DNA of 63,844 bases, the filler included, from Choristocarpus tenellus KU-1152 (lineage: Eukaryota; Protista; Phaeophyceae): assembly GCA_964200185.2 (NCBI GenBank). It is 10 parts of 10 records of this genome, joined end to end, with 100 filler letters (N's around TTAATTAATTAA, not from the genome) between each part and the next. Parts side by side here need not be neighbours in the genome. Positions count along the whole stretch, not along the records: positions 11,356 to 27,689 come from CAXNAD020000840.1; 9 more parts are not named here. One strand, written 5' to 3'. Both the position numbers and the translations under genes were made by a program. Positions 11,256 to 26,160 of the stretch are shown piece after piece. Every line of letters starts with the position of its first letter. The first letter of the stretch is position 1. Below the pieces are notes generated by a model. The model was not told the DNA's origin, searched no databases, and saw only the letters and a list, made by a program, of their open reading frames with translations.

Positions 11256-11799
11256 NNNNNNNNNNNNNNNNNNNNNNNNNNNNNNNNNNNNNNNNNNNNT
11301 TAATTAATTAANNNNNNNNNNNNNNNNNNNNNNNNNNNNNNNNNNNNNNNNNNNNTTTTTTTTTTTTTGTTTTTGGGGGGGGGGGGGGGGGGGGGGGGGG
11401 AGGGGTGCGGGCATCCCTTCCTCTCACCCCTTACGACCCACGAGTTTGTTTCCTCATAGCACACACCTCTTACAGAAAGGTATGATACTTCAGAAGGTAG
11501 GATACTGACCCTGACCCTGACCCTAACACTAACACTAACACTAAAATCAAATTATTGTCATACACCAGTAGTAGCACCAAAATTTCTAAACACACCTAAG
11601 AACAAAAAATGAGCTAAAACATGAGGGTGATTTCTGCGAAAGGCAGTATGACTGTGCTCATCACGTTCAGGAACCATCTGTTTGAAATCGCACAAATTTA
11701 AAAAGTTAACTAAAATAGGGTTAACTACAGGCAGAAGTGGAAAAAAATATATGGTAACTTTTAACTATTTCTGGCGGAGAAACTGTTCACTCAACTCAC

Positions 11800-14700
11800 C
11801 CATCTGTAAAGCTCACGAACCCATAGCCCTTGGATTTCTTGTTCCATTTTTCCCTGATGATCTTGGCCTTTGCAAAGGAACCATACTTTCGGAACATCTG
11901 TGCTAAGTGCTCATCCCCCACCTCATTGCCAAGGTCTCCCACAAACAGGCGATAGTCGTCTAACAGGACATACCCCCCCACACATACGTACACATGTACA
12001 TACACATACACACATACATACATATATACATACATACATATATACATACATACAAATAAAGACCGAATTAGGCACTTTGACAGTCAAGAGTCCACGTCAA
12101 GGTTGATTGGTCGGAGGGATGTGGTATGTATGATATGATTGGGAAGAAACAAATCCAATAATTACGCAGCTTGTAAGATGTAGTAGTAACAATAAAAGGT
12201 GTATCATACGGAGTCAACAAGGTACATGGTATGCTAGCTCCATGTATTAATGCAGTCAACAATCATTTCCAATTCTCTCCCTAACCTTACTCCTAACCCT
12301 AACTTCCAATTCTCTCCCCTTGCCACTAGAATCTCTTGGAGAGTATCTAAACATTTGAAGGTAGTGTATCACCTCAGGTAGGGCAAAGGAACTGTACTCA
12401 CCAATATCCCTAACTCATCCATGGATGACAATTGTGCATTGAGATATAGCTTGCATTTGTCTACAAGTAATCCTCAGCACACATGTTGAAAAAAAACACC
12501 CCTCCGCTTCAACCAGCACGCCTCCTTCCACTACAAACAGTACAGCAACACTACCCTCTACAAAACACACCACCCTATTTCTCAGCAGGCTACCAACTGC
12601 CTTGTTTTTTTTTAAAGTAGAAATTCATGATTTCCCAACTAAAAAATCAAATGTCGGAACAGCATGGCACTGTAACACTGCAATGCCAGTAAGATAGTGT
12701 AACTGTTAAAAAAAACATAAAAGGTTTATTGCTTGGTGTCATCACGTACTGTGGATTGTACAGTAACCCTACTCTATTCCATGGTACAATAGACAGAAAC
12801 ACACAGTACAATAAAGCAAAACCATAAAAATATTCCTCTTCAATATTTTTTTCACTCTTTTTTCTTTTTCATGATTCCAAACTTCCAAGTCACGTACAAA
12901 TTAAAAAACACTTACTCTACCCCTTCCGCCCCCCCCCCCCCCCCCCCATCACCCCCGGAGTGTAAGTAATACTCCTGATTTTCATATCACAGGAATCAAT
13001 TTTTTCTGAAGTTGGATTTTTTTTTGTGAAGAACATAAACAATTTACCCTAAAAATGAATGGACCAACAGCAGAAAAATAAGTACACACACAATAACACA
13101 CTTGGTATGACACTCACTTTCCGGCCAATCAGCCAACGATTCATCCACCCAGCTCTTCCCCCCTCCAACACGCTTAAACTTAGACTTATCCTTTGAGTTT
13201 TCTCCCTCCCCTCCTTCCCCTGAAGCTGCTGCCCCCGCCCCTGCCCCAGCACCTGACTGATCCATTCCCACAACACCAGCACCAACACCATAGCCTGCTC
13301 CTGCTCCGTAGCCATAGCCAGGCATATTTTGGTATTGCCCTGCTTGCAACCAGGCATGAGGGCAGTTGTCAACATTTAGACTGATGAACAAACAAGGTAT
13401 GACAATAAGATATCACAAGGAATAACAAAAAGTGTGATATCATAAGTATCACCAAAAATCGGGGATGTAACCGTAGTCTGAAATTGCAAAGGTCTGTCAC
13501 TTCATCAAAGAATTCGGGACAGCTGCCGACTAGATATTGGGAGGCGGACAGGTTGATATGTGGGAAATAATGACGACGGCGTAAGGTACATACTGAATTC
13601 AACATACTATCATTTGTTTCTTTCACACTAGATGGTCATTGTGCGCAGTTGACTAAACTGCAACCCTATTTATGTCCCAAAGAATACATCCTCTGTTCAG
13701 CATCAGCCCGACAGTTCATGGGGTAGAAAAAATATCGAATCAAGAAGGTGCTTCTTGTTACTTTGCAGCAGGCGGTGTATAAAAGGCGGACCAAGTCAGA
13801 TTTCACTGAGACTTTAGGGCATACCTCATTATGGGATGTTGCATGGCCACCAGAAGAAATAATAAAAATCAGATAGAACGCATTGTGCATATATAGCCTG
13901 CCCCACGAATTGTACAAAACGGATGCTTAACAGAGTAACTATTAATACGTAAGATTGATAAAGTGAGACAATACAAACCTCTTCCATCACCATAGCACCT
14001 AGACGCTTTGATTTTAGTTCTTCTACAAGCATTAAGCTACTTGACAGAGCTTTAGATTTAAATTTTATATTTTACCGAGATATCATGTGCTATTAAAGTT
14101 GAAATTGTTCCTAATCGAGTACCTACCGCCATACCTTTTAACATACCTTTTAACATACCTTTTACATCTTCAGAGGTTTCAAGAGCATCATTTTCTCTAT
14201 AAAGGAGAGCAATTTTCGAATCAGTAGACGGTTTAGAAAAAATTATTTTTGCTAAATGCTCAAGAGTAATACACTGCACGCGAGGTCCACCACACAGGAG
14301 ATGCTCAGTAACACAAGGAAGTTGTTTCTGATAATCTACTGATATATTTTTTCTTAACTTCTTTTGTATAAAATTGCATCCAAACTATACCAAAGCTTTT
14401 TTTTATCACAGTTAATAAGACAAACCAAGACATTAAAGATTTCATCACCAAGGCCTCTGACACTTTCACTAATAGATTGAGTAAGAAAAGCAAATGCGGC
14501 AGCAGCAACTATACCCAACATTAATCCTAAAATGAAATAATTCTTTATGGGTTTTGTTACTGCTAAGATAACACCAAGTAAAAAAAAAATTCAAGGCATT
14601 GATGGAACACTACAACTACTATATTAAACATTTTTTGTTTTTCTTTTACTGTAATCTTGCCCCGCTCGCGATATTTTCATGATGTGCAACTGCTGCTGTT

Positions 14701-17700
14701 CGTAAAAAAAAATGTATTTGTTGGGAAAAATATATATATATCTAGAAATGGTTTAAAACAGTAGAGGGCCCCCCGCACAGAAATCGTGTTCTTCATCTCT
14801 CGAGGCGTTTCGGAAAATCAGATACCAACACAAAGCAGGTTATTAAATAATGGTTGAAGGGGGTGAAGAATGAAGTTTTAAGGAAGGTAATGTGATCGGG
14901 TGAACACATCACATTGTCAAGTTTGCAAATTTGGTCATTAGTATCGTTGCTGTATCAAAGCACATCTCCATCACCACACCTCAACATAACAAGGGGAAAA
15001 ACCACTTCCCTATTATAGGTGACAATTGGGGCGCTGAAACATTGCAAACTTCATTTATTATAGGTGGATTGATCAAGGAATCAATCCAGAGAGTGAGTAT
15101 AATAAACATGACATTTGCCACCAACGATGTAACAAATTTGACAATACACTGTCAACAGCTTTCTGCAATATCCTACCCTACAGTCAACTCAACTGGAATG
15201 ATAAAAATCCACTGCAACACACATATATATACATATGTACACATACGTACACAAAAGGTCCCATACAATGATAAACAATGCCACAGAGTCTGACAGGAGA
15301 TAATTCCCATGGTGTTGGAAAACCCTTGCTTTACTCATGTTGAAACATTGCACACGACCCATTAGCTATCACATGCACACACCTACTACATGCAAAACAA
15401 ACCTTGTAAACTACACACATGATGGCATGTATTGTGCACACATTTGGACACACCCACACCTCTTTTTCCTACAAATGCAGTATCTGAGGCAATAGATGCC
15501 AATAGTCACACAACAAATGCAAACAAAAAAAATTGATAACAAAAAAATATATATACATACATTAAAAAAAATTATTCTATTGGAACAATCACCACCTACT
15601 CACCTTGTTGTGCCATCCCATACCCTGGCGGGTACCCTCCTCCCATACCACTGCCCATGCCCATACCATTCGCCATCATCCCATTTGGCAGTAACATCGC
15701 CCCCATCCCCATCCCATTGGTCATCCCCATGCCATTATGCATCCCCATGCCATTCACCATCCCCATTCCACCACCCATTCTCATACCGTTCCCCATCCCC
15801 ATTCCATTCCCCATTCCTATTGACATTTGCGGTCCACTGCCACCCCTTCCCCCTCCGTGGTACATTCCTCCCCTACCCCTACCTCCTCCCCCCATCATAC
15901 GGCCCTGTTGTTGATGATGCTGGTGAGAATGTTTCCCTTCAAGAACTGGCTGATTTACAGCCGGTGGCGCCTTGTTGTCCTTCCCCTGCCCCTTCCCTTC
16001 CCCTAGCACCTTTTCCCCTCCCCCCTCAGTTGCTCTTGCCTCTGTGTGAGGAATGTCACTACTGTCCTGTCCTTTTGAGGCAGGGGAGGACCCTTCAGCA
16101 CCCTTCTCCACCTAACAAATATTTAACAAACGGTTTTTCACGAATTTCGTGGTTGTTCCAGTCAACTATTATATGTAGCAGGTACAGATAATGGGTTGTT
16201 TCAGTTGATTGGCGGCTACAACTCCATAGTTACTACAATAGCCTATAGATTGTTACAGATAATTCATTGCCACAGACATTGCTCATTACATTCATTCAAT
16301 TTGATATACACACAGAGTTGATAGATCTAGTCATTCATTCTATCTACTAACAAATCTTGGCTGTTACAGATACGGCTCAATGCTAGTAGAAAGAAACAAA
16401 AACACGCCCTTTCAAGCATGCTTTCAACTACACTACACACAAGACAACGAACCACAAAACAAGCACCATAGTCCCATACATATTCACACCCTGTACACTC
16501 TTCACTACATTGAGGAGGCCTTCCCCCTTCCCTTGCGCAATCCAATCTTCATCCAACAACAGCCCAAAGCAAGCAAACCAGATCACTTTTTATTGATGCA
16601 GATGTGCCACCTGCTACTACTGTACATCCCCTCCTACCCCCCCACACACACAATCACCAAATAAAAGCAGTTATGCATTCAGCATCATAGAGTGGCGTCA
16701 AATAAATCCTCAAACTATCTAAACTAGGAGGGAGACCCTAACCCTAACCCTAATGAAAGACGATAGAGGTAGAAAAAAACCCTCATGTTTAAACTGTACA
16801 GTGAATTCAACGACTCCTACTCTCCGTTGGGAAACAGGGGGGGGCACATGTGATCACATGTGGGATTTCAGAGTTTACCAGAGCAACCAGGCGTCTAGCA
16901 ATGAGACACTGCTGAAAAAAGTAGCTAACCAGCATGAACGATAAAAGTGATACTTAATCCTTTATTTTACAACCCCATCACCCATCATTCAGTAGTGCAC
17001 CTACTTCCCCTGTCCAACATCTAGTTTATTAATCTTTCTCATATGCACAAGCTGTTTGAACCATTGCTGAACATAGGATGTGTATCACACAGCATGCTTC
17101 CAACTACTGCGAAAAGGATCCAACTACCACTTAGGCTCATTGCCCTACCAGCAACAAAATATCATCACACCTGTACCACACTCCCCCCACAGTTCACAGT
17201 CCAAAACACCCATACACAGACACCCAAATTGCCTACAAATAAAATCACCAAACTCCTCTCAAAACAGTCCGGAACCTTCACCTGACTGTCCTCTCCCCCA
17301 GCTGCGACATCACTCTTAGGGCTCTCTTGGGCACTACCTCCGGTGATGTCCACTCCACCAACACCTACCCCATTTGTGGCACCAGTACCAGGGGTAGATG
17401 TGCTGTTTGGAGCTCTTGTCACAGCAGAAGACCCGTTTACCGTAGCACTAGTTGCAGATGCTTTTACAGGGCGCGCTGCTGCCACAAGCTTTCCCGCTAT
17501 TCGCATTTTCTTGGCAGCAGGAGCTGGGTTCGAAGCAGTGGATGTGTCCTGACAGAAACGGACCCCGTTCAGATATAAGAAGTATTATCATATTGTTCTA
17601 CACGTGTGCTTTGTGTCACAGTGGGAGTAATAGGAGTGTCCTATGGGATAGGACGGCATTATATTCATTTCTTTTACACGTGTCTGGTACAACACAGTAT

Positions 17701-19925
17701 ATGGCATCACACACTCACATCATACTGTGCTTGCATTGATGTAGCAGGTGATACACCCACACATGAGACATAAAAAGGTTGGATGCAGTATATGAAAATT
17801 CCACCATAACTCACGCAATGTACGCACTACGCGGCTGACAAGACATGATCTCCCATCGTAGGTATGACACAAGTGCACAGTTCCTTTCTGAGTTAGGGGA
17901 TATCTAGGAAAAACATACGAGCCACTTCACCTTAAACTATTTTAATAGGTAGCTTTCATTGGAGGTAGGCAAAACTAGGAGTAAACTGAAGTAAAACAGT
18001 TTAGTGTACTACAAGGTAATGCTACTACCACTAATGATAATAATTATTATTATTGTTACTGTTATTACCATTATCATGGGAAGAGGGACCTATACCCACA
18101 ATAGGGTAACATGATCAGTGATCAATAATTATTTGAACGCGCCTCATTTGATAAGTTGTTGACAGCAGTGCCAATTTTTAGGTCAGTGATGGGGGGGGAG
18201 GGGGGAATAGAGGAAAAACGGTGTGGGATGAAAAAATCCCTTCAATTTGATGACAATAAAAAAATCATCTAACTGAAACATACAAAAAACATGATAAAAT
18301 GGGTTAGGGACAAGACTAAAATAACTGAAGGTGAACTATGGTTGGCAGGACAAGAGTACAATATGACATAGTTTAAGTAAGAAATAGTAATTGGTGGTAT
18401 TCTGAGTATACCTTGAAAATTTTCAGTGATAGTAACCTTTGTGCCCTCAAAACAATCTGCAGATGACCAAATTTTTCGACCAAGGAGATGAGGATTTCCT
18501 GGATATATTCAGTCACTGGCCTTACCCCAAAGAGCAACTGTGTAACAGTACATTTCACTGGTTAGGGATATGGTGCCACAAAAGGACACTTGCAGTGACA
18601 CAAGGGGGGGCAATGATACACATACACTATTACCATTACAAATACTAGCTCTAACATGTTTTGTATAGCCATAAAAGAAGGCATTTATCTTGATCAGGAA
18701 AGACAAAGGTGAGCCTTTCCTATTTAATGAATGCATATCAAACACTACTTGTTCAATCACATTTTCTAATCTAGGAGAGAGCCTCAAAGCGCATTGACTC
18801 CAGAAGGGCCTTATTTCTTTGTTGCCACATATTAGATTGGGAGGGGGGTGAAAGTCAACAGCCAAAGTGAGAGATGAATAGTCCAGGCACTAAATTAAAG
18901 ACCAATCCAGTGCAGCAAATTCAATAGATGACCTGGTATGGGCTCACGATCAGGCAATCATGATTTTTGGATACATGTAGAAGCATGTCCTATCTACTAC
19001 AAACTTGTAGAGCACACAAGTTGCCAATGCGACTTGGGAAAAAGGCGCGAAGGACAGCAATGTCACTTCAATTTGAAACCGTACATTACGCACACACAAA
19101 AATACCCCCACATTGCCGGACAAATACGTAGCAACTACCAGCAGGTAAGCAGCAAGAGTTGATCGACTAAAGAGAAATTTTCGAAAATTTCTATTGGTTC
19201 TCAGGTCAATCTCTAACTACAACCCCGACCCCGACCTCAGAACGGGAGTGCTCCGTTGGCCAGCTTTCACTGGCAAGTACTTAACCCGAAAAGTTGAATG
19301 TGTGGTAGTAGTAACAGATAGTACGGAAAAAGAAAATTAGATGTGGACAACCAGGAGAAGCTAGGAAAAAGCTGTTTGCGTCACTATTATTGCTTCACGC
19401 AAGTACCAGATATTATTGATAATGGATCAGTCCCTGGCAAGGGGGTTGATTGCCTTGGCCATCAAGTATGCGAACGGGCCAACAGAAGCTCGTTAGTCGA
19501 TAAGAAAAACTAATATGCAAAACAGAGAAAAATGAAGTCGGAAAATATCACTACAGGCAGAAACAACAACGAAAGCAAGACTAGAGATGTGGACCCTGAC
19601 AAGACGTCTGATGTTTCACCTACTTGGCATTCCACCAAGTTAAGAGTCAGGGACATCACACGTGAACAGCGTGATGAAAAGGGGAAAGAAACTACCAGTT
19701 GTAACACAGGGAGAGAAAATTGAAACAAAGACGTCACAACATCGACAAGGAGGTTGTTTGCCCTCAATCAATCACCTCCGCTTCCCCGTTCCGTTTCCCC
19801 CCTCCAAATGATTCGTTGACTTCATTTTCTCCTTTCTCTGTATCATCCTTCTGGGTTGCTTTGATCTTGACCTCCTTTTCTGTAGCTTTGATCTCGCCAA
19901 GGAACTCAGCGAATAGGTCATCCAT
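11800..19925 (-). CDS. RBM42: RBM42-like RRM protein, 3'-partial. Exons 19925-19776, 17548-17282, 16111-15604, 13339-13118, 11959-11800
   Basis: Spliced junction gives KRVGGGKSWVDESLADWPENDYRLFVGDLGNEV...KSKGYGFVSF, the RBM42 signature. Splice phases are consistent (0,0,1,1). The N-terminal exons are low complexity and less certain. Confidence 0.88.
12000..12055. repeat. (TACA/CA)n microsatellite; similar tracts at 58905-58935, 45239-45262, 47975-47996 and (ATCAGA)n at 53972-53998
   Basis: Directly visible simple repeats. Confidence 0.9.
14005..14265 (-). pseudogene. Bacterial-like fragment resembling the C-terminal tail of Rpn / PD-(D/E)XK family proteins
   Basis: AT-rich. KGMLKGMLKGMAVG (12-bp repeat) is followed by ISTLIAHDISV/SKALSSSLMLVEELKS, resembling the GxxKGxxKG + short helical tail of Rpn proteins. 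Disrupted by stops and a frameshift. Confidence 0.4.
14320..14631 (-). pseudogene. FTR1/EfeU iron permease N-terminal fragment, Rickettsiales-like, frameshifted
   Basis: Conceptual translation MFNIVVVVFHQCLEFFF/LLGVILAVTKPIKNYFILGLMLGIVAAAAFAFLTQSISESVRGLGDEIFN/..VLLTVIKKSFGIVWMQFY. It carries a degenerate RExLE motif (FHQCLE), GxGDEIFN and IVWMQ. Frameshifts at the T10 run (14580-14589) and near 14425. Confidence 0.75.
14632..14681 (-). pseudogene. Possible C-terminus of a cupredoxin-domain (EfeO-type) gene upstream of the FTR1 fragment
   Basis: HENIA/RGKITVKEK immediately before the FTR1 ATG resembles the cupredoxin ending HxxxAxGxIxV. Very short. Confidence 0.3.
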
Positions 19926-20554: not shown

Positions 20555-21649
20555 ATGTCGATCTCGTCGCCCTCCCTCCCTGGGTTGACGGCGGTGTCGA
20601 GTGATCAGTCTATAACAGCCGCTTCGATGGCTGCTGCGGCTGCTGCATCGGCCGCAGGCTTCCAAGGGATGCCTGCCCCCGAAGACAAAAGGACCAAACG
20701 GGGCTTCAGTAAACGTGTCACACTTCGTGACTTGGAGCGATACTTTGAGTATCCAATAGAGGAGGTTTCCCGAATGATGGGTGTCTCCACCACCATCATC
20801 AAGCGCCTCTGCCGAAAATACGGAATAAAGAGGTGGCCCTATCGTCAGGTATGTTATTCTAGGTACACACTTTTTGGTGATATAATTGTGACCTGGAAGA
20901 AATCATTCCTCTCATCTCAAAGTTGTTGTTTGCCTCTGGGCTGTGCATTGTTCTTGAAGGCAGCGTCGGCAAAAGCTGTGACCAGCTCGAAAAGCTCTAC
21001 GTTCCACAACGTGCTCAAAACAGATTTTTTTTCGGGGCCAAAACAGGTTATTGCACTTTTTCGCCCCCAGTTATTGACCACATTGCCTCACTGCGTATTC
21101 CACCCCAGAACCTATAATCTTGCAACTTGAATCAACTCGAGCTCTGCGAATTCAGTTCCATGTTCTTCACACTCAGCGCTTCCTTGCTCACCAGTCGCTG
21201 TTAAGTTAAAGTTTCATCTCCCCAGTTTTTCTCATAGCTCTCGACATAGGTGCAGCGGGACAACCATAACGACGCCCCTCTCACCGCGATCACCACAACT
21301 TACCCTCTTGGCAACTGTTTACCTTTATCGTCGTTCTCACGTACCAGATACGGAGTGTAAACAAATCCATCAAGTACGTAGAGCTCCTAGCCCGTACAGC
21401 ACAGAGTCCTGACCGCCAGCGCCTGCAGGAGCAACTTGTCTCGTTGCACTACAAAAAGCAACTCATTTGCCAGGCCGCTACGTCAGGCGCATCCGCCAAG
21501 GTTCGTAAGTCTATCCTACAGATGCGACCAGAGGAGCTTGATGCTGACACCCTCGCGCGTACTGGCATGGCGGCTGGGGCGGGNNNNNNNNNNGGAGGGC
21601 TCGCGAGGGGAGGGGCGCAGGGGGGGTGGGGGCGGCCCGCCGGGGGGGG

Positions 21650-21690
<41 letters not shown>

Positions 21691-22630
21691 GGATAACGAG
21701 GGAGAAGAAGGCAGTACAAGTTCATCGCCGGCAAATGGAACACCATCAGAAGGTGAGACGTTGGCGGCAGCTGCAGCTGCGGCCATGGCTGCTTCAATGA
21801 ACCCCTATGGTATCCCACACCTCTCCATGGCAGGAATGGCCATGGGATACAGCCCATATGCACACATGGCAGCTGCTCAGCATGCAGCTATGGCAGCAGC
21901 AGCTGTGACAGCGTCAACGGCTGGTGGGGGGGGAGGAAAGGATGGGGGTGTAGACAGTAGAACTGAGGCGGTGGCACCACCTGCACCAGCTCAAGGCAGT
22001 TCCCTACCTCAGATGCCCCAACCATATCCACACCTTGGGGTGTATGGGGGCTATCCTGGAATGATGGGCATGCCTTTTCCTTTCCAGGGGCAAGCATACC
22101 CCGGAATGCCAGGGTATGGCATGGTGGGAATGGGGGGGTATCCCAGTCTAGCGTGTGGAGGTGGTGGGAGTATGGGAGAACCAATGTCGATGATGGGTGG
22201 GATGAATGGGATGGCTGCAATGCAATGGGCTGCCCATGCCATGCAGTATCAGCAACAGCTGCAGCAGCAGCAGCAGCTCCACCAGCAGCAGATGGAACAA
22301 TCTCATGGATGCGGTGCTGGCAGCTCTGACAGTGAAGAGGGTGAGGACGATTTGGATGGCGAGGCAGGTCATGGGGGTAACAATGGTGCTGGAGACAGGG
22401 GGGACCAAAGAAGTGGGGGAAGGAAGGTGGGTAGTGATGGACATGGGAAAGCAGGGGTGGGTGGGATGCCAGAGGATGGGGAGGAGACGCAATCTGATGG
22501 TGATGCGGAGGAAGAGCCAAGGTGGGAACCCCCAGCTATTGTAGGTAGAGTTAACACAGCACAGTTGACTAGAGGTGAAGGTGGTTCAGCAGGTAGCAGT
22601 CATGTTTTGAGGGGTGAGCATGTTCCATAA
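20555..22630 (+). CDS. RWP-RK domain transcription factor; exons 20555-20848 and 21348-22630 (10-N gap and unreliable poly-G at 21584-21690)
   Basis: VTLRDLERYFEYPIEEVSRMMGVSTTIIKRLCRKYGIKRWPYRQ|IRSVNKSI. GT-AG intron 20849-21347 in phase 0. Ala/Gly/Met/Gln-rich C-terminal region. Confidence 0.9.
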
Positions 22631-23749: not shown

Positions 23750-24295
23750 GCTCGCCAAGAAAACTTTAGACACCCACTACGAGGGCTCTCTTGACCCTCA
23801 TAGGCATAACCTCAACAACTTTGCAGTGGAAAGTTTTGGGCACCTCAGAAAGCAAGTGGATAGCTTTCTAGATGAAATAGCTATGCACGCAGTAGGGGGG
23901 AGGGGGATAGGAGGTTCTAGCAGGAAGGGGGCTGTCAAATCCTGTCTATGACAGATAGTTTCTGTCACAATACAGGTGGCCCTATCCAGACGGGTCTTGC
24001 GCTTTAAGCTGGAGACACCAGGGAGATGGGCAAGGAAGGGCTTGTTAGATTTGTGGGATGCCTCCCTAGCCCCTCACCCTGGTGTACAGGACTGAGCTAG
24101 GTTAGAGGCACGGGGAGGGAATGGTGTAGCATAGCTGGTAGTAAAATAGTGAGTAGATTAATGTTTTTCACATTTATGACTACTGTTACTTCTTTAGGGT
24201 TAGGGTTGTTCTAATGTGTGAATAGTTTTTGTTTTTGTTGATTTTTCCCCTGACACATATGCAAAATGTCAAGAGGGCATAATAATATATATATA
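23750..24295 (+). mobile_element. 3' end of CRE-like non-LTR retrotransposon: restriction-like endonuclease C-terminus, 3' UTR hairpin and TA-rich tail
   Basis: HYEGSLDPHRHNLNNFAVESFGHLRKQVDSFLDEIAMHAVGGRG...RKGAVKSCL*QIVSVTIQVALSRRVLRFKL (FAVESFG motif). It ends CCCCTGACACATATGCAAAATGTCAAGAGGGCATAATAATATATAT. Confidence 0.8.
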
Positions 24296-25037: not shown

Positions 25038-26160
25038 CATCACCATCCAGTAGCGGGATGAACCACTTCATCAACACACAGGTATTGAACCACTATCAAA
25101 ACCTACTTGTTATTTTCACCACTGTGATCGAAACTTCAGTCTGGGACTAGGGTTCCATCTCCACCCCTGGTCAGAGACACAAACTTAGGCGCTACACCAC
25201 CTCTCATTTAAAAAAAAAAACTTCAACTGTTGCGCTAATATCACAACTAACAGCACTGCCCCCCATTCACCCCTTAGAATTTTTTATTTCATCTTGTGTG
25301 CGTTGGGTTCAGCCATCCCACACCACTCACCGCATTTGCGGCTTCCTCTCTCCTCAGCAAATACTCCGTGGTGATGAACTCTTTCCACACCATTTGGATG
25401 TTTTCACATGCCTTGTGCCTATAATTCATAGTAGTGAGAGGCAGGACAGTCCAGGTGTACAGTCTGTAGTCCTTGCCAAATGGTCCATCAAAACCTCATT
25501 TCCCGAAAAACAAAGTCTGCCAAGAACCAGGTTTGAACCGGCTCAAAAGTTCGCAGGAGTGCTGGTACTCAAACCATTGTTAAAGCAGTTCGAAGTTATC
25601 CAGGTAACTCAGAAGGTGCCTGTTCTGGGAGGTCAAGATTCACAGGGGATGCATTTCTCGGAATGGAGTCAGTGCCTGTGTGAACTGGAGACACAAAAAC
25701 AAGGTATACCTCTGACCTGCTCTGTGTGGACTCACACCAACGTTGGTGTTCTTTGAGACCAAGTTACTAGGGTATATTAACTTTTAGCTTCATCAGTTAA
25801 CTATTAGTTGCCCCAGTTGCTAAATTGAGCATTAACTGTTAATGACTCCTATGGGGATGCTTGTATGTGGGACCACGTGTGCAATGAAGACCAGGTTTGT
25901 ATCATTACTGCAAAATCTGAACTTTTTTTAAAAAATTATTAACGGACCTTATCAAAGTGCTTCCGAAACTGATGACACAAATTTTCAAAAAGGTTTGTAT
26001 TAACAACACATAACGAGGGTATAATCTCCACTCTTCATACTGACCTGCACTACTGACCAGCAACCCCAAGACATCAAGTACCGGAAAAGGCTTCGGGTTT
26101 CTCCACACTTTCCGAAATTGTAATAATATTCTTCAGGGTGTAGGTCGAAGTCGCCAGTTT
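25038..26160 (-). pseudogene. Intron-containing pseudogene of unknown product; exons ~26160-26045, 25675-25331, 25102-25038
   Basis: Canonical GT-AG boundaries in matching phase 0. Protein-like translation with four in-frame stops and no frameshift. Confidence 0.55.

Follow-up and report, generated by a model that had tools for sequence, protein, structure and literature searches.

Decayed Rickettsiaceae-like gene fragments in an RBM42 intron of the brown alga Choristocarpus tenellus

How did the remains of a bacterial iron permease come to lie inside an intron of a brown algal gene, and do they still do anything there? The window (the whole stretch of DNA that was analysed, 63,844 nucleotides with filler included) is from Choristocarpus tenellus. 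An earlier note on this DNA had placed a Rickettsiales-like FTR1 relic at 14320-14681, within an intron of the host RBM42 gene, and had proposed that it was transferred from an endosymbiont to the nucleus. The features of the locus are these:

15604-16111, minus strand: Gly/Met-rich exon of host RBM42, upstream of the intron, with an AG acceptor, an open frame, and a phase-1 GT donor at 15603
13340-15603, minus strand: host GT-AG intron that holds the bacterial mosaic, 2,264 bp, phase 1
14624-14681, minus strand: decayed 3' end of a Rickettsiaceae cupredoxin gene, 58 bp; its stop codon overlaps the ATG of FTR1 in the same 8-nt arrangement that the donor lineage has
14287-14631, minus strand: Rickettsiaceae FTR1/EfeU relic, clear for codons 1 to about 104 (to 14320) and probably extending, weakly, to about codon 118 (to 14287)
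13979-14292, minus strand: relic of the middle of a Rickettsiaceae gene for a polar amino-acid ABC substrate-binding protein (SBP, family SBP_bac_3), codons about 87-182, frameshifted
14130-14165, no strand assigned: three tandem copies of a 12-bp unit within the SBP relic, absent from the aligned bacterial genes
13678-13943, no strand assigned: old dispersed repeat of the host, just beyond the SBP relic, with matches of 69-76% identity on at least 15 other contigs
13118-13339, minus strand: host RBM42 exon 3' of the intron, which splices without a stop
11800-11959, minus strand: host RBM42 RRM exon, which splices without a stop from 13339-13118

The setting of the insert is as the earlier note described it. 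All three exons (16111-15604, 13339-13118, and 11959-11800) are bounded by canonical AG/GT sites, and their joined frame is free of stops, so the insert does lie between correctly phased host exons, in a GT..AG intron of phase 1. The relic is AT-rich, with a GC content of 0.32 versus 0.39 for the remainder of the intron. The RRM exon was the one exon searched against PDB; its top single-domain match was human RBM42 380-431 (E 2.6e-15). Judging from this similarity, the host gene is RBM42, as its single C-terminal RRM is most like that of RBM42. Its first exon appears to start near 19925. On plastid contig C1 of this assembly, rbcL and rbcS match the Choristocarpus tenellus genes with full identity. 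From the style of its genes and from its CpG level, which matches that of other host loci, we infer that this nuclear contig comes from the same alga.

The FTR1 piece is of Rickettsiaceae type. The peptides that had been quoted for it are encoded at 14631-14308 of the minus strand, in frames -3, -2, and -3. With the 78-codon stop-free stretch as query, a search of 1.84 billion proteins gave five matches, and four of these are Rickettsiales-type FTR1 proteins (one from a named Rickettsiaceae, two others in cupredoxin-FTR1-ispA clusters); the fifth is a spurious match to a repeat protein, which we rejected. The best of about 130 relatives, P0047, is 68% identical to the relic across residues 15-76, and the contig that encodes it (L025) is the closest bacterial locus: in blastn it aligned to 14329-14681, nearly the range first proposed, with 72.8% identity over 367 columns (E 4e-50). 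When the middle piece was compared to a profile of Rickettsiaceae FTR1 proteins, it was 71% identical (hhalign E 8e-22). The living relatives belong to PF03239 and match models of EfeU; the relic pieces themselves fell below detection, with no match in Pfam or NCBIfam. Likewise, a related-locus search with the FTR1 piece and a homologous-protein search with the SBP piece came back blank because these pieces are short and decayed.

The possible cupredoxin C-terminus next to the ATG also proved to be real: the final 52 nt or so ahead of the ATG align with the cupredoxin gene of L025, and the relic retains the 8-nt overlap between the cupredoxin stop and the FTR1 start, which means that the gene order of the donor is preserved. 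A search for more of the cupredoxin upstream of 14681 gave p=0.95. In its sequence, its gene order, and this overlap, the relic resembles the Rickettsiaceae cluster of cupredoxin, FTR1 (EfeU-like), and ispA. It differs from the cluster in that just 58 bp of the cupredoxin and about 40% of FTR1 are left, and broken (the C-terminal 60% of FTR1 is absent), and an SBP piece stands in place of ispA.

We also considered whether the FTR1 piece might derive from the host. We rejected this: in the wider tree described below it nests among Rickettsiaceae, and the host's own FTR1, an intron-containing gene on contig C12846, has no similarity to the relic. Eukaryotic or algal best matches, which would have argued against a bacterial source, did not occur.

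The insert does not end with FTR1. The earlier note was right about the FTR1 part, but the block continues to 13979 with a fragment of a second gene: the SBP relic at 14292-13979 matches Rickettsiaceae genomes (E 1e-13), with 75% DNA identity to its closest relative (L147). Altogether, the RBM42 intron holds about 700 bp of Rickettsiaceae DNA from three genes. This insert is a mosaic of two loci of the donor chromosome. Among close relatives, the FTR1 and SBP genes are about 1 Mb apart in the complete genome G001, and in L085 the SBP gene is not within 10 kb of FTR1; in a distant relative (L024), they are 1.3 kb apart on opposite strands. Where the FTR1 piece (at codon 118) meets the SBP piece, the bases TGGTGG can be read as part of both donor genes, which makes a join by microhomology possible. 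If these bases are left out, the extension of FTR1 to codon 118 has p=0.02, and the microhomology sits in decayed sequence. Elsewhere in the intron (13340-13975 and 14685-15200), a search for other bacterial DNA in 41 genomes gave only chance-level matches of 31-45 bp, and the host repeat at 13678-13943 was not found in the Rickettsiaceae genomes searched.

To see how far this DNA extends through the genome, we compared about 40 kb of donor-lineage DNA to the assembly (27,310 contigs, 164 Mb). Besides the two pieces in the window and one piece of 99% identity, there were about 15 further matches at E ≤1e-9, on other contigs. These are 87-430 bp long and mostly 70-85% identical (one is 90% identical), and part of them were read in context. 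The 24 kb of donor DNA that was chosen independently of the window gave six matches, or 0.25 per kb. For a donor genome of 1.2-1.5 Mb, this would correspond to roughly 300-550 fragments, probably a few hundred, as extrapolated from a limited sample by a search that misses some matches. As controls, 20 kb of AT-matched Rickettsia DNA gave one nuclear match, and 20 kb from a GC-rich alphaproteobacterium gave plastid matches only and none in the nucleus. The proposal of an endosymbiont-to-nucleus transfer in an algal host stands as to its Rickettsiaceae origin, but the scale is larger than the earlier note had allowed for: the window relic is one of many.

At the loci that can be read, bacterial pieces are set in host-like DNA. 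Contig C12068 (L009:764-1328) has pieces of bipA and of cupredoxin/FTR1, in the order of the donor, beside an apparent copia-like remnant; its cupredoxin/FTR1 start is a second copy that has decayed differently from the window's. Contig C5478 (L002:775-1251) has a second, longer SBP relic, which is split by a host repeat of about 75 bp that recurs in L002 and L138 and is absent from the bacterial loci. This SBP relic adjoins a reverse-transcriptase remnant. The FTR1 starts of C12068 and the window have R10H and a poly-T run in common, and both SBP copies lack the W after LGTI; this hints at shared decay of duplicate copies, although most of the shared differences resemble those of the donor lineage. 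Contig C4793 (L129:650-1750) contains a 1.1-kb AT-rich mosaic of four to five unlinked Rickettsiaceae pieces, including ispA and dapE. About 0.5 kb before it is an exon that we take to encode the host's UDP-glucuronate decarboxylase. A further mosaic on C20031 (L138) joins a piece that resembles the start of a UbiX-like gene, a piece of L044 type, and pieces of a sodium:solute symporter.

Two pieces are less diverged. A 166-bp piece (C233:9813-9978) is 90% identical to the stretch of donor contig L162 that adjoins an ankyrin gene and reverse transcriptase there, and is possibly of a younger layer. A 150-bp piece (C27122:413-562, L027) spans the end of FTR1 and the start of ispA and is 98.7% identical, without gaps, to the Rickettsiaceae MAG g1_MAG_00005. 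Other pieces at 75-84% identity also resemble this second lineage. The C27122 piece may be a recent insert from the second lineage, or it may be an assembly chimera, a sign that the culture contains a living symbiont.

The host captures cytoplasmic DNA in general, as NUMTs of a similar range of ages are present. Three 16S-like pieces in the nuclear DNA, which we considered as rickettsial candidates and rejected, match the assembly's own mitochondrial 16S gene best (97% identity for C13979 [L142], 69% for C3948 [L144], and 77% for C8857 [L146]).

How decayed is the relic? The earlier note had counted two frameshifts; the alignment has more than two indels. The frame of FTR1 is broken near codons 15 and 73, 9 nt are lost near codons 32-34, and there are additional indels near codons 95-99. 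Its homology to FTR1 proteins, which start with a RExLE motif, is clear, but the motif is not intact: RECLE has become HQCLE, while 138 of the 141 living homologues have R10 and E11. The second RExxE motif and the full-length frame (about 273 amino acids) are missing, as the relic, frameshifted, stops by codon 104-118.

Substitutions have fallen on all codon positions. Between the SBP relic and its closest relative, divergence at codon positions 1, 2, and 3 is 0.17, 0.18, and 0.21, as compared to 0.27/0.10/0.43 and 0.26/0.13/0.50 for pairs of living genes; for FTR1, the relic has 0.24/0.14/0.32 and living genes have about 0.2/0.08/0.55. Each of the two SBP copies, in the window and on C5478, has about 9-11% private changes, spread evenly over codon positions (10/9/6 in one and 10/9/12 in the other, at positions 1/2/3). 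Across ten relic pieces pooled, transitions were more frequent at CpG (27 of 74) than at other C or G (121 of 612, p=0.002), and a control with living pairs had no such excess (p=0.28). The host's own CpG observed/expected ratio is 0.45-0.48, with an excess of TpG/CpA, in the window piece and in other host loci (the locus of the host FTR1, L016, is higher, at 0.66). This depletion suggests CpG methylation in this alga, unlike in Ectocarpus, and the excess CpG decay of the relics would fit residence in such a CpG-depleted nucleus. The claim that the insert is decayed is well borne out by the frameshifts, the lost RExxE motif, the flat divergence of SBP, and the excess of CpG decay. The relic has decayed neutrally, with about 10% substitutions plus indels. 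With the mutation rates of Ectocarpus and Scytosiphon (PMC10254074), its age comes to 0.8-2.9e8 generations, which is a very rough estimate and assumes that a methylating host does not mutate faster, as it may; perhaps tens of millions of years have passed since the insertion.

This decay bears on whether the relic might have a function, as a domesticated FTR1 exon, a peptide, or a regulatory element. It is on the same strand as the host gene, and a stop-free stretch of 78 codons is left. However, it is frameshifted, it has lost the RExxE motif and the C-terminal half of the protein, the divergence of SBP is flat across codon positions, and the host has its own FTR1. We also looked within the bacterial block for a cryptic exon in phase and found none. 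A functional role is extremely unlikely, and from its sequence the relic almost certainly does nothing.

The decay also bears on whether the insert might be an artifact, with reads from a living or degenerate Rickettsiaceae contaminant stitched into the host intron. The assembly is fragmented (27,310 contigs), and the C27122 piece, which is about one read long and 99% identical to the MAG of a living bacterium, could be such an artifact. The window relic, in contrast, has decayed neutrally and bears a CpG signature, and it brings together two loci that are unlinked in the donor. Copies that decayed differently are found elsewhere, and a host repeat interrupts one of these. This pattern of decay, the mosaic structure, and the divergence of the second copies speak strongly against a chimera that involves a living bacterium. 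A full-length donor FTR1, BipA, or 16S gene was not found in the assembly, which also disfavors a contaminant; but the missing genome of a living donor is uninformative because the source project filtered out bacterial reads before its short-read assembly (Phaeoexplorer paper). Of the 31-mers sampled between 13100 and 15700, a range that covers the insert and an exon on each side, three sequencing runs from three samples of one study contain fractions of 1.00, 0.94, and 0.76; one of these runs is probably the source of the assembly. We consider a chimera very unlikely. The relic's contiguity with host sequence in the assembly supports integration into nuclear DNA.

Which bacterium was the donor? 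In a tree of 39 FTR1 proteins, with the breaks of the relic read as X, the relic forms a clade with P0047 and P0057, which are uncultured (support 99/99), and this clade sits inside an aquatic group that includes Ca. Megaera venefica. A wider tree that includes the host's FTR1 as well as archaeal and other bacterial proteins agrees (SH-aLRT 98). Groupings with Rickettsia plus Tisiphia (p-AU 0.024) or with the L044 clade (p-AU 0.002) were both rejected; those with M. polyxenophila (0.055) or M. venefica (0.099) were not. Both the FTR1 and the SBP relics have 73-75% DNA identity to one uncultured lineage. The resemblance to Rickettsiaceae and the suggestion of a Megaira-like source in the earlier note agree with both trees. 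These data support a donor from a Megaera-allied, aquatic lineage of Rickettsiaceae, which FTR1 does not place with a named species. Of five 16S-like pieces on nuclear contigs, three are the NUMTs described above and two are unassigned; we recognised no rickettsial 16S relic among them.

We also considered a real transfer from a donor that did not reside in the alga: Rickettsiaceae of epiphytic or grazing protists might have entered through wounds, or a virus or mobile element might have carried the DNA. The closest relatives of the relic are known from metagenomes, which would allow for this; a literature search for papers that name their samples found none. But the many fragments of housekeeping genes from across the donor chromosome, from two lineages, fit better with long intracellular contact, and the surroundings of the window relic contain no recognisable transposase or viral gene. 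Also, algae are known hosts of intracellular symbionts from the Rickettsiaceae (PMC4324946, PMC10132079). A non-resident donor is quite improbable; the donor seems instead to have lived inside the alga.

Overall, the relic is very probably a non-functional nuclear insertion from an aquatic, Megaera-allied Rickettsiaceae that was resident in an ancestor of this brown alga. Such an insertion would begin with bacterial DNA being freed and broken up in the host cell. Two fragments that are distant on the bacterial chromosome, and that are adjacent here, would have been joined, perhaps via 6-7 nt of microhomology, and captured in the RBM42 intron, where we find them, presumably during repair of a double-strand break, by analogy to NUMTs and NUPTs. 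The insert would have been harmless and would survive since splicing, whose phase is intact, removes the intron; afterwards it accumulated the neutral decay described above. The same process would account for the many other fragments, which derive from two or more donor lineages and, it appears, from different times.

The closest precedent is the rickettsial insert of Volvox carteri, a single mosaic locus of 9 kb, confirmed by PCR, in which 16S adjoins murB (PMC4324946, 2015). That locus is young: in Volvox strain EVE, murB and ddlB have no frameshift or premature stop (PMC4324946). In both cases the DNA is in an algal nucleus, the donor is from the Rickettsiaceae, genes are truncated, pieces that are unlinked in the donor are joined, and host repeats interrupt them. 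Both involve two different rickettsiae, and the Volvox case was read as endosymbiotic transfer. Volvox is a green alga with one young 9-kb locus, whereas this brown alga has many pieces of 70-430 bp, mostly 70-85% identical, across the genome. Also, our piece lies in an intron of a conserved gene and, unlike the PCR-confirmed Volvox locus, is known from sequence alone.

Nuclear Wolbachia transfers (nuwts) and NUMTs/NUPTs are non-functional DNA from cytoplasmic residents in the nucleus, often mosaics, and they decay neutrally. The relics described here are likewise dead, mosaic, and neutrally decaying nuclear fragments, but the donor is an aquatic Rickettsiaceae instead of an organelle or Wolbachia, and the host is a stramenopile. 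Finally, Davison et al. (2023, PMC10132079) binned a 'Ca. Megaira' genome from sequencing reads of another brown alga, Nemacystus decipiens; nuclear or horizontal transfer goes unmentioned in their paper. That genome also ties Megaira-type Rickettsiaceae to a brown alga; unlike the relic, it is the genome of a living bacterium.

More broadly, the fragments could be a layered record of infection by Rickettsiales, with mosaic fragments in the hundreds, derived from two or more lineages of Rickettsiaceae and ranging from about 10% decayed to 99% identical to a living genome; this reading could equally be right or wrong. If it is right, then Rickettsiaceae have lived inside brown algal cells repeatedly and over long periods, and possibly still do, and much of the gene content of an old symbiont could be read from host DNA. 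The prior tie between Rickettsiaceae and brown algae was one genome from mixed reads, and its source could have been an epibiont or a protist in the same culture. Compared to a binned genome, decayed copies that are passed on in the algal nucleus speak more strongly for intimate, germ-line contact. In the literature that we searched, we found no report that a brown alga has nuclear Rickettsiaceae inserts; Rickettsia, Megaira, and endosymbionts go unmentioned in the Phaeoexplorer paper, whose screen for transfers left out singletons. Other brown algal genomes could be screened in the same way to learn which lineages were infected, and when. The fragments would also document how mutation and CpG methylation act on neutral DNA in Discosporangiales, where the Phaeoexplorer paper found DNMT1. 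By itself, such a relic is ordinary junk; what deserves attention is the record across the genome, from two lineages, in a brown alga that diverged early.

We also noted other features of the window and the assembly. An RWP-RK transcription factor gene lies head to head with RBM42 (window 20555-22630 and on, plus strand, Pfam E 5e-19), and 25292-26132, on the minus strand, contains probable exons of a further host gene, with no match in Pfam. Elsewhere in the assembly, C26928:1388-1543 (L018) and C39:1899-2051 (L019) match the SBP_bac_3 family, with no DNA match to Rickettsiaceae loci, and probably encode receptor domains of the host. Short interstitial telomere-like runs (CCCTAA/TTAGGG) occur in non-coding DNA of the window at 11509-11544, 16736-16753, and 24194-24205.
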